Assembly (NCBI GenBank): GCA_964036045.1
Contig: OZ038378.1
Coordinates: 147,126,001-147,190,000 of the forward strand
From: Eutreptiella sp. 'Long Island Sound 2002'
Taxonomy: Eukaryota > Protista > Euglenida
Length of the DNA stretch: 64,000 bases
Direction: 5' to 3'
Of this stretch, positions 44,501 to 47,665 are shown piece after piece. The notes under the pieces were generated by a model, which saw nothing but the letters and a program-made list of their open reading frames with translations, was not told where the DNA came from and made no database searches. Numbering within the stretch: position 1 is the first letter of the stretch; each line of letters begins with the position of its first letter. The position numbers were made by a program, and so were the translations under genes.

Positions 44501-47500
44501 GTGAGGGTGTGTACTACGCCACTCTCAAACTCTCAACCCAACAGACATCCGTGCGTGTGCCCATAGGCATCACCTCTCTCCAGCCCCGTCTGCACCGCAG
44601 CGACGTTGGGATTGATCAGATGCGCTCCACGTGCCATTTCCGCCCTCTGCTCTTCTGCCTCTTTTGAGGAATCAGAACCTCTGAGGTGTGTTGGTTGGGT
44701 AGCCGCCGTGTTGGACCTTCCATGCCTCGACACAAAAACGCTGGCGAGGTACTGTACCCTCTGCATCCATCTCCCCCAGCCCCTGTGGTACAGGCGCGGG
44801 GGGGACGGGGGCGGTGGTGACTTCGGTCTCCTGGGCTTAGGGGCTGGAGGAGTGGGATGGCAGTGTAGTGATGTCTGTGAGACTGAAAGTGGTTGTGTTG
44901 GCCCCGAGAGGCCGGGCTTTTTGTGTGGTACATGAGAGTGCGACGAATGCGTGCGCCTTTTGGTGCGTAGGGACGGGGGTGCCCGGGCGGTGATGGCCCC
45001 TGGCACGGCAGTGCCTTACCCCACGTTGCTTGAGGGTGCGGCGAGGACAAGGAGGGAGCCGGTGCGCCTCACACGGCTGCGATTGGGGTCTGCGTGAAAC
45101 GTAGCCCATTGCATGAGGGCCGAATGCGCGGCACGCACTGGCCGGCCTTCGGAGTCGTTTGCATGTGGTGCGCGCGGATTGATTGTGTGTGCTGCAGTGC
45201 CGCTGCCCCGCCTGTGGTGTCGGTGGCGTTGTGCTTGGTGCGTGCGCATGCCTGCGAGTGCCGGTGTACGGGCGCTGTGGTACGAGTCCGTCCCCAAATT
45301 GGACATTCTGAATTCTGGACAATTGGACATTCTGAATTCTTGACAGCCGCATAGGTTTCCCGACTTGCACCAGATCATCACGATTGGGGGTGATAATGGC
45401 AGTCCAGTTGCAGACATGAGGCCGAGTGAAGATGAGGGCATGAGGGCAGGGTCACACCTTAAATGGGGCGGGCGCAGGGGCACTTGGTGCAGATGGAGTC
45501 CCGACGTTTGTGGACTGGGTCTTCGCAGGGGCTGGCTCTAGCGCTGCGAGCGACGGCAGCATGGACCACAGCTTCGCCTTCCAGGGCTCCACAACCACCT
45601 CAAGCCCCACAGCCTCGTCAGCGTCCCCCCGATCGAGGAACGGACTGGCGCCGAGCTCCCGCATGCGGAGGTCAATCACGCGGCCCGCCCGGCAGAACTG
45701 CGCGTAGTTGGTGTCGCCCAGCGCCAAGACGCTGTATTGCATGCCCTGCAGGAGGTCCCGCGGGTGTGCCTTCTTCTTCAGCCACTTCACAAACTTGCGC
45801 GCGTTCTCGGGCGCCTCCGCATCGCCCGTCGTGGAGCACACGATGACCAGAAGCGGCGCCATAGCAAAGCCGACGCTTTCGTGCTGGTTCAGGGCGGCGA
45901 TCTGCGCGGTGTACCCCTCTCGACACGCCCTCGTGTGCAGCTCATGGCAGATGCCTTCGGCATTGCCCGTCTCTGAGCCATACAAAAACAGCAACGGCTT
46001 GCGGTTGCTCCCGGCCGGGGGCACTCTGGTGGTTGCGGCACCAACCTTCACCCCTTCCTGCGGGGTCCCTTTGGCAGGCGCACCGGGACTCGCGGCACCG
46101 GCGGGTGCGCGCGGGGCTGTCGCCGCGGGCTGCGCGGGGGCTGCCGGGGGCGTTGCGCCAGGACTCGCGGCCTTCGAGGGGGCTTCGGGGGCTGCCGCGG
46201 TGGGACTCGCGGCCCCTGCGGGTGGGCGCGGGGCTGTCGCCGCGGGTTGCGGGGGGACTGCCGGGGGCGTTGCGCTGGGACTTGCGGCCTTCGAGGGGGC
46301 TTCGGGGGTTGCCACGGCGGGACTTGCCACGTCCTGCGGGGCCTCCACGGCGATGCTCACGGGCTCAGGGGCGGCAGCGCCCGTGGCACGAGAGGGCGAC
46401 TCAGGGAACAGCTGGCGGGAGCAGTCCTGCAAGACGCTGGCCTTACGGTCCACAGCACCGGGGGCCGCGTCTTGGGGTGCGGCGCCCTCACATGCGCCCG
46501 TGACGGACGGCAGCGCGGCCCACAGCTTCGCCTTCCAGGGCTCCACCACCGCCTCGAGCCCCACGGCCTCGTCAGCGTCCCCCCGCTCAAGGAACGGACT
46601 GGCGCCGAGCTCCCGCATGCGGAGGTCGATCGCGCGGCCCGCCTTGCAGAACTGCGCGTAGTTGGTGTCGCCCAGCGCCAGGACGGCGTACTGTATGCCC
46701 TGCAGGAGGTCCCGCGGGTGCGCCTTCTTCTTCAGCCATTTGGCGAACTTGCGCGCGTTCTCGGGGAACTCCGCGTCGCCGGTCGTCGAGCACACAATGA
46801 CCACGACGGGCGCGGTCACAAAGCCGGAGGCCTCGTGCTGGTTCAGGGTCGAGATGGTGCCGGTGTAGCCCTCACCCTGCGCCTGCGTGCAGAGCTCGTG
46901 GCAGATGCCTTCGGCGTTGCCGGTCTCGGATCCGAACAAGAACAGCACAGGCTTCGTCGGCGTGCGGGGTTCTGCTGCGGCATCCGCGGCGGGCGGGGCA
47001 GCAGCGTCCGCCGCGTCGGTGTCGGCGGCGGGCGGGGGTTGGGGGGCGGCGGGGCGCAGGCCCATCACCACGTCCGGCTGGGCTGCGTCAGCGCAGATCT
47101 GTGGGAGGACTGCGTCGACCACGAGGGGCTTGCCGTGGGACACGGCGGGGCCTTTCAGGGACGGCAGGGCCGACTTGGCCCCGAAGGCGGAGGGAAGGAC
47201 GGCCCACAGCTTCGCCTTCCAGGGCTCCACCACCGCCTCGAGCCCCACGGCCTCGTCAGCGTCCCCCCGCTCGAGGAACGGACTGGCGCCGAGCTCCCGC
47301 ATGCGGAGGTCGATCGCGCGGCCCGCCTTGCAGAACTGCGCGTAGTTGGTGTCGCCCAGCGCCAGGACGGCGTACTGTATGCCCTGCAGGAGGTCCCGCG
47401 GGTGCGCCTTCTTCTTCAGCCATTTGGCGAACTTGCGCGCGTTCTCGGGGAACTCCGCGTCGCCGGTCGTCGAGCACACGATGACCACGACGGGCGCGGT

Positions 47501-47665
47501 CACAAAGCCGGAGGCCTCGTGCTGGTTCAGGGTCGAGATGGTGCCGGTGTAGCCCTCACGGGTGGCCTCAGAGCGCAGCTCGTGGCAGATGCCTTCGGCA
47601 TTGCCCGTCTCCGAGCCGTACAAGAAGAGAACCGAGCGCTGGACTGGCTGGACTTCCATTCCCAT
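38592..47665 (-). CDS. MTRR: Methionine synthase reductase-like diflavin reductase with three FMN domains. Exons 47665-45458, 44476-44156, 42703-42314, 41025-40747, 39835-39521, 38963-38592 (~1294 aa)
   Basis: Flavodoxin motifs YGSETGNAEG, CSTTGD and LGDTNY..FC...D.......AD..VGLE.VVEPW (MTRR-type). FAD motifs RYYSIASS and GVCTSWL. NAD(P) motifs GPGTGVAPF, FGCRH, YVQD, YVCGDA and YHEDIY*. All five introns are GT-AG, phase 0, and the frames join. An additional upstream exon cannot be excluded. Confidence 0.88.
39160..39332 (+). mobile_element. Partial family S copy with tRNA-Gln-like module, in an MTRR intron
   Basis: Near copy of 41625-41790 (ACACGGTGGTCGAGC...CTGATCCGGTGACCGCGGGGCGGTTCGGCACCCC...CAAACCTTTGACCC). 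Confidence 0.65.
39874..40082. mobile_element. hAT-like MITE, same family as 7352-7566, in an MTRR intron
   Basis: CAGAGATGCACTAGAAGG ... CTTCCAATGCATCCCTG with a homologous interior. TSD not clear. Confidence 0.75.
41081..41131. repeat. (GGGA)n microsatellite
   Basis: Seen directly. Confidence 0.9.
41390..42010 (+). mobile_element. Family S copy with expanded (AGGC)n (41478-41582) and tRNA-Gln-like module
   Basis: R1 (TTCGGCAAGGCACCTC), then the microsatellite, the GGTGGTCGAGCGG...GGTTCGG module and a full R2 block. Confidence 0.7.
43369..43627. mobile_element. MITE with AGGGATG...ATGCATCCCT termini but a different interior, in an MTRR intron
   Basis: AGGGATGTAGTAGAAGG ... GTCTAATGCATCCCT. 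The interior matches 29425-29642, not 7352-7566. Confidence 0.7.

Follow-up and report, generated by a model that had tools for sequence, protein, structure and literature searches.

We analyzed a 64,000-nucleotide stretch of the genome of Eutreptiella sp. 'Long Island Sound 2002' (contig OZ038378.1, positions 147,126,001 to 147,190,000; hereafter the window, in whose own numbering the coordinates below are given) and found a six-exon gene on the minus strand, most parts of which are seen in RNA, that carries three flavin mononucleotide (FMN) domains ahead of a single module for flavin adenine dinucleotide (FAD) and reduced nicotinamide adenine dinucleotide phosphate (NADPH). The FAD/NADPH module places the gene, with good confidence, in the methionine synthase reductase (MTRR) family. 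MTRR, cytochrome P450 reductase (CPR), and NDOR1 have one FMN domain, which shuttles electrons to the partner protein. As an account of the whole, we consider it probable that the gene is a transcribed MTRR-family reductase with a triplicated FMN domain and a multi-shuttle mechanism, in which one reductase module would serve all three copies.

All three complete Flavodoxin_1 domains are encoded by exon 1 (47709-45458), whose coding part (45458-47665, minus strand) runs for 736 codons, starting at the first ATG (47665), and contains, in this order, FMN1, linker 1, FMN2, linker 2, FMN3, and the beginning of the hinge. In a Pfam profile search, the minus-strand open frame at 45455-47719 matched Flavodoxin_1 in three separate stretches (E = 2e-81), and in a whole-genome profile scan each copy matched positions 2-143 of the 143 in the profile. 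The domains lie on the minus strand at 47174-47638 (FMN1, which aligns along its full length to the NDOR1 FMN domain 4h2d), 46490-46954 (FMN2), and 45536-46000 (FMN3, the one nearest to the FAD module, also covered by RNA contigs). FMN1 has the motifs GSETGNAEG, STTGDAEFPEN, LGDTNYAQFC, and GDADE, and the FMN-binding motifs for the phosphate loop and ring stacking are intact in all three copies. Linker 1 (46955-47173; ~73 residues) is Pro/Ala-rich and is spanned by a DNA contig of run X5 at 46846-47229, while linker 2 (46001-46489; ~163 residues), represented in RNA contigs, is Pro/Ala/Ser-rich and holds a tandem repeat with 2.1 copies of a 117-nt unit (46084-46324). FMN1 begins 10 residues after the first ATG, leaving no room for a targeting peptide. 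At the DNA level, the domains form a repeat family, D1, of three 300-nt copies with 89-100% identity, and a threefold repeat of this kind is far beyond chance. A single-sequence AlphaFold2 model of exon 1 (mean predicted local distance difference test score of 50), with three alpha/beta blocks separated by low-confidence unstructured linkers, weakly suggests three FMN folds. An earlier note, made from the letters alone, had described three complete flavodoxin domains in one exon, joined by Pro/Ala linkers and followed by a single FAD/NAD(P)H module; the Pfam matches agree with its domain coordinates within a few bases, and both the linkers and the single module (FAD_binding_1 and NAD_binding_1 exons at 44476-38595, same strand) were recovered.

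The three copies have diverged to different degrees. Nucleotide identity is 92% between copies 1 and 2 and 82% between copy 3 and either of the others, the differences being mostly synonymous or conservative. The synonymous divergence (dS) between copies ranges from 0.18 to 0.44, with ratios of nonsynonymous to synonymous divergence (dN/dS) of 0.31-0.34, and the third copy is recent, with a dS of 0.18 to copy 1. None of the copies looks like a decaying remnant, and all are under purifying selection. Copies 1 and 2 share a 383-nt tract of 97% identity (46884-46502 vs 47568-47186) with diverged ends, which is the pattern that gene conversion would leave.

Near-identical cores are also where an assembler may go wrong, and the DNA read contigs break in these cores, and only there, as they would if the triple repeat were an expansion of a one- or two-copy gene. 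The copies nevertheless differ at 8% and 18% of their bases, linkers 1 and 2 are unrelated in sequence, and the DNA contigs of X5 and X7, two runs of the organism, span all four unique contexts (47530-47828, 46846-47229, 45697-46545, and 44804-45662). The two runs are possibly the source of the assembly itself and hence not independent DNA support, a point that counts against the gene as we read it. An expansion is nonetheless very unlikely, its chance being close to negligible; the earlier note had named it as grounds for giving up the triple-domain reading, and the diverged copies, the unrelated linkers, and the contigs over each unique junction all speak against it.

To delimit the gene, we used tblastn with two full-length relatives, a Euglena gracilis transcript (P0006) and a metatranscriptome protein from an intron-less 3.4-kb contig (P0002), which gave six colinear exons on the minus strand, 61-76% identical exon by exon. 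The exons were searched singly, and in the trees the window gene was represented by its full-length relatives P0002 and P0006. The exon translations sum to 1286 residues, and all five introns are GT...AG and in phase 0. Intron 1 (44477-45457; 981 nt) is followed by exon 2 (44156-44476), which encodes the Ser/Pro-rich hinge and the beginning of the FAD domain (KPFTARV...) and is supported by RNA contigs as well as tblastn matches to P0006 and P0002. Exon 3 (42314-42679) matches positions 36-132 of the FAD_binding_1 profile and is covered by RNA contigs at 42312-42383 and 42351-42612; beyond intron 3 (41026-42313; 1288 nt, GT...AG), which is demonstrated by RNA, exon 4 (40747-41025) matches positions 152-222 of the same profile. 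Exon 5 (39521-39835), identified by profile and tblastn, holds the start of NAD_binding_1 followed by a low-complexity insert, and exon 6 (38963-38595, followed by TGA), 75% identical to P0006, matches NAD_binding_1 positions 29-108 and ends in ...GRYHEDIY. The motifs RxYS..SS, GxGxGxAPF, and CGD of FAD/NADPH modules are present as RYYSIASS in exon 4, GPGTGVAPF in exon 5, and YVCGDA in exon 6.

Evidence of transcription comes from the contigs of two estuary metatranscriptome runs, in which the depth is very low and patchy (1-9 on the flanking unique parts). RNA contigs cover 47335-47710 (FMN1), 46317-46484 (linker 2), 45697-46103 (linker 2 into FMN3), 45470-45728 (FMN3), 44153-44302 and 44299-44478 (exon 2), and 42312-42612 (exon 3). 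At 42312, a contig has a loose end that is an exact match to 40994-41023, proof of the splice between exons 3 and 4. At the 5' end, contigs from both runs match the genome up to 47710 and then have an overhang of 8 nt, which reads TTTTTTTC in the sense of the mRNA. The spliced leader TTTCTGAGTGTCTATTTTTTTTCG has ~7,480 copies in the 2.28-Gb genome and its reversed control 0, and an AG acceptor lies at 47710-47711 on the minus strand (genomic ...CCCAG/GATTTT), with the mRNA body starting at 47709. The euglenid spliced leader is trans-spliced onto the mRNA at this site, just upstream of FMN1. The 24-nt euglenid spliced-leader copies are scattered over both strands of the chromosomes.

Three features of the RNA data weigh against the gene model as drawn. 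First, neither RNA run has a contig on 46485-47334, a region that includes linker 1 (46955-47173), the only stretch separating a three-domain from a two-domain mRNA, and a two-domain mRNA or allele therefore has to be reckoned with. The main product might then have fewer FMN domains, either because most transcripts are without domain 2 and linker 1 or because a two-copy allele exists in the population: copies 1 and 2 have near-identical cores, which short reads could not tell apart, the uncovered region has unique flanks at depth 1-9, and the relatives P0002 and P0006 have two domains. With RNA coverage this low and patchy, however, little can be read into a gap of 380 nt; the stretch 46485-47334 showed neither a splice signal nor a joint and stays in frame within one exon, and the dN/dS of ~0.3 between copies 1 and 2 speaks for the translation of both. 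We regard a product with fewer domains as quite unlikely.

Second, the joint between exons 1 and 2 (45458/44476) was not seen directly in the RNA contigs, and third, one RNA contig departs from the genomic sequence at 45470, which is 12 nt short of the predicted donor, and leaves 2 bases unmatched. A donor at 45470 joined to 44478 would lead to a TGA five codons on, overlapping an ATG, and exon 1 could accordingly encode a stand-alone tri-flavodoxin, or a polyprotein cut into free flavodoxins, with separate translation of the FAD/NADPH exons starting at the ATG at 44466. Polyproteins are known from euglenids, and the public gene call at the locus (P0001; 748 aa) consists of the flavodoxin open reading frame alone. 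The arguments on the other side are that the GT-AG intron 45457-44477 joins the exons in frame; that the match of an exon 2 RNA contig begins at 44478 with 10 unmatched nt upstream, which fit ...AAG/GAGG from the donor at 45458 and not the spliced leader; and that the orthologous transcripts of P0002 and P0006 fuse the FMN and FAD/NADPH parts in one open reading frame. Polyprotein processing was rejected on the grounds that there is neither an N-terminal targeting sequence (the start lies 10 residues before FMN1) nor a series of repeated short cleavage-type linkers, the two linkers being long and unrelated. Separate expression in either form is highly unlikely, and the GT-AG ends, the phase, the 10-nt overhang, and the fused orthologous transcripts together suggest the joint 45458/44476 and, with it, a single fused product. 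Within intron 1, an RNA-library contig of 151 nt matches 45159-45309 exactly and could be unspliced RNA, DNA carry-over, or an unrecognized exon.

The assignment to the MTRR family is based on trees of the FAD/NADPH module, with protein names taken from NCBI and UniRef. P0002 and P0006 grouped with diplonemid proteins with full support (100 in the Shimodaira–Hasegawa-like approximate likelihood ratio test, SH-aLRT), and this euglenid-diplonemid group belongs to a clade, supported at SH-aLRT 98, whose other members include fungal and algal MTRRs and, among animals, named MTRRs of Haliotis, Ptychodera, Nematostella, and others. Bacterial CysJ and, from the genome itself, the paralogues of CPR, P450-CPR, and pyruvate:NADP oxidoreductase (PNO)-like type were placed outside the clade. 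Among solved structures, the FAD/NADPH part of P0002 scored 173.7 bits with human MTRR (2qtl) and 159.7 with a CPR FAD domain, whereas for the genome's CPR (L005) and a P450-CPR-like protein (L006) the MTRR score was far below the CPR score. The hinge between the end of FMN3 and KPFTARV of the FAD domain is ~111 residues long. An exceptionally long hinge, separating the FMN domain from the rest of the protein, distinguishes MTRR (PMC13376404), and the length in the window protein thus supports its membership. With P0002 and P0006 standing in for the window gene, its placement in the MTRR family, which the earlier note had also proposed, is well supported by their position in the MTRR clade (SH-aLRT 98), apart from the genome's CPR-type paralogues; by the same token, the window protein would be expected to have MTRR function. 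The MetH activation domain (PF02965), which marks the presumptive partner, methionine synthase (MetH), was found in the genome on contigs C8 (382 bits) and C18 and on two small contigs.

Some comparisons were less favorable or did not discriminate. Where MTRR has a single N-terminal FMN domain, the window protein has three. The best solved match of each FMN copy was the NDOR1 FMN domain 4h2d (85-87 bits), which counts against MTRR but is not decisive for NDOR1, since no MTRR FMN domain was among the solved-chain matches. On the same side stands the tree, which had no NDOR1 reference (none of the 20 clusters looked up bore an NDOR1 name), so that NDOR1 is excluded only indirectly. NDOR1/Tah18 proteins are typically ~600 residues long with one FMN domain and a short hinge, whereas the window protein is 1286 residues in length and combines three FMN domains with a long hinge; furthermore, the fungal matches of a chytrid query came only from early-diverging lineages (chytrids, Mucoromycota, Zoopagomycota, and Glomeromycota), with none from Dikarya, which argues against a universal Tah18-type protein. 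A protein-cluster search scored NDOR1, MTRR, and CPR clusters alike (0.96) and did not separate the families, and a reciprocal genome search with a spider MTRR was ambiguous, single-exon paralogues outscoring the single exons of the window gene.

Two other loci in the genome weigh against methionine synthase as the acceptor of the window protein. The first, L007 (contig C20:13205994-13209623, minus strand; L007:379-2271), is a second MTRR-type module, an open frame of 631 residues limited to FAD_binding_1 and NAD_binding_1, whose top solved match is human MTRR (2qtl; 166.6 bits vs ~115-125 for CPR). It joined MTRRs of green and red algae in the tree, its branch being long and odd in composition, and is possibly of endosymbiont origin; its tail of ~175 residues after ...RYVVERW is Ser/Thr/Ala-rich, and no FMN domain was found within 10 kb upstream. 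The second, L027 (C20:37253000-37262999, plus strand; exons 3269-3577 and 6267-6665), at a distance of 24 Mb from L007, starts with an FMN domain close to the window copies (99.5 and 82.7 bits to their profile). No FAD/NADPH module was found within 10 kb upstream or 20 kb downstream of it, and it may encode a free flavodoxin-like protein. L007 and L027 might be the real partner of MetH.

If so, the window gene would encode a multi-FMN reductase of the MTRR clade whose main acceptor is something other than methionine synthase, or a general cytosolic electron donor, with MetH served by L007, perhaps together with L027. The margin of human MTRR over CPR is wide for L007 and small for P0002 (173.7 vs 159.7), L007 has green and red algal MTRRs as its neighbors in the tree, and the Chlamydomonas orthologue of a three-flavodoxin gene of Volvox is annotated as nitric oxide synthase (NOS)-like and not as MTRR. 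The window family nevertheless sits inside the same MTRR clade, as sister to the diplonemids as vertical descent predicts, and shares the long hinge; UniRef and the Joint Genome Institute (JGI) give members the name MTRR; and L007, with its odd branch, is without an FMN domain in the 10 kb upstream. Another acceptor is an unlikely explanation, and we keep methionine synthase as the preferred candidate.

Multiple FMN domains are not confined to Eutreptiella. Among 119 non-self related protein clusters, we counted two FMN domains in 97, three in 5, and one in 17; the set came from a word search whose ranking favors multi-domain matches, and the counts are hence not frequencies. The carriers include oomycetes, labyrinthulids, diatoms, a dinoflagellate, Diplonema, and E. 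gracilis, and a representative search added an Ostreococcus-like prasinophyte with two FMN domains. Some of the multi-FMN members are named MTRR by UniRef or JGI, including a three-domain protein of the labyrinthulid Mucochytrium (UniRef). A Volvox gene has been described with three flavodoxin domains and a FAD domain and as "not functionally characterized in any species" (bioRxiv 10.1101/2023.01.10.523483); in the literature that we searched, this was the only paper to mention a multi-flavodoxin reductase, and the searched literature on algal MTRR listed the three Pfam families and did not remark on repeats. The earlier note had known of no such architecture, a statement that gives way to the two or three FMN domains counted in 102 of the 119 related clusters and to the Volvox gene already in print. 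The window gene is a member of a widespread, unstudied multi-FMN group of MTRR-type reductases.

In trees of single FMN domains, the three window domains (d1-d3) grouped together (SH-aLRT 97-98), as did those of P0005, P0008, P0016, P0019, and Aphanomyces, while diatoms and diplonemids have older, orthologous d1/d2 pairs. As the domain copies cluster within lineages, the multiplication of FMN domains, or their homogenization, must have recurred many times. A recurrent, independent multiplication in euglenids, diplonemids, stramenopiles, dinoflagellates, and prasinophytes could reflect selection for one FAD/NADPH module charging several tethered shuttles and so serving more than one MetH molecule or isoform, or distinct acceptors, simultaneously; we offer this only tentatively and consider it doubtful.

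Compared with human MTRR (2qtl), the window protein has the same order of FMN domain, long hinge, FAD domain, and NADPH domain, the same cofactor motifs and clade, and likewise no membrane anchor; the human protein differs in having one FMN domain in place of three and a C-terminus of ...DIWS in place of the euglenid ...HEDIY. The euglenid C-termini (window 38595-38620, P0002, and P0006) read ...GRYHEDIY and, like bacterial CysJ (...RDVY), have Tyr as their last residue; those of the remaining MTRR clade read ...DIW plus one residue. CPR and NDOR1 share the three Pfam domains of the window protein but combine one FMN domain with a short hinge. Multi-FMN proteins of the same architecture and clade occur in Mucochytrium quahogii (A0A7S2S3E2; three FMN domains), Aphanomyces (two), diatoms (two), the Ostreococcus-like alga (two), and Diplonema (at least two), although the extra domains have arisen or been homogenized separately in each lineage; we found no biochemical study of these proteins in the searched literature. 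Volvox carteri Vocar.0018s0107 and Chlamydomonas Cre16.g683550, likened here by description only, have three flavodoxin domains followed by a FAD domain, an arrangement common to other green algae and oomycetes, but differ from the window protein in their predicted targeting N-termini; the Chlamydomonas gene is the one annotated as NOS-like.

A functional parallel is found in bacteria, where MetH is reactivated by flavodoxin and a flavodoxin (ferredoxin)-NADP reductase (PMC13376404). The same chemistry is there split into a shuttle and a reductase, and several shuttles per reductase resemble a free flavodoxin pool, but the bacterial parts are separate proteins, whereas the shuttles of the window protein are tethered to the reductase.

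In the account that we propose, intragenic tandem duplication gave rise to the FMN copies, and gene conversion has made them partly uniform. As for the mechanism, NADPH would reduce FAD, the three tethered FMN domains would dock on the FAD module in turn, and each would deliver an electron to the cob(II)alamin of methionine synthase, so that one reductase module could charge several shuttles. Judging by what is known of diflavin reductases, only one FMN domain could occupy the FAD site at a time, and the three copies would for this reason take turns. We infer a single polypeptide with all three domains, MetH as its acceptor, and alternation of the domains at the FAD site. Alternatively, electrons may be relayed from FMN to FMN in place of turn-taking, or the extra FMN domains may be binding or chaperone modules. 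A complex prediction for the MetH activation domain (L021:1465-2385) with FMN3 scored 0.02, which counts neither for nor against binding.

In textbooks, diflavin reductases stand for electron transfer through a single FMN domain that swings. A natural family in which each FAD/NADPH module has two or three FMN domains would allow the influence of docking, turn-taking, and tether length on electron flux to be probed. The multi-FMN family is spread over B12-using protists of ecological importance (diatoms, dinoflagellates, euglenids, and prasinophytes) and bears on how such algae keep cobalamin-dependent methionine synthase active under scarce B12. The window gene is a clean case for such work, with a third copy that is recent yet constrained and a gene model defined well enough for cloning.

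The genome is rich in diflavin-type reductases. They include PNO-like proteins fused to PFO (L001 and L004, on contigs C12 and C18), two BM3-like P450-CPR fusions on contig C11 (L006 and L026), and a protein with Oxidored-like and FAD/NAD domains but without FMN, shared with E. gracilis (L008, contig C9). Both L008 and L026 were tried as NDOR1/Tah18 references and rejected, the former for having no FMN domain and the latter for being a P450-CPR fusion. In the window itself, the part of intron 2 at 43400-43600 is a very high-copy repeat in the organism's runs, with a summed contig depth of 11,000-56,000 against a baseline of ~11-23 and many variant joints, and the region just upstream of the gene (48951-61182) is retrotransposon-rich, with a reverse-transcriptase-like open reading frame at 49398-50567.

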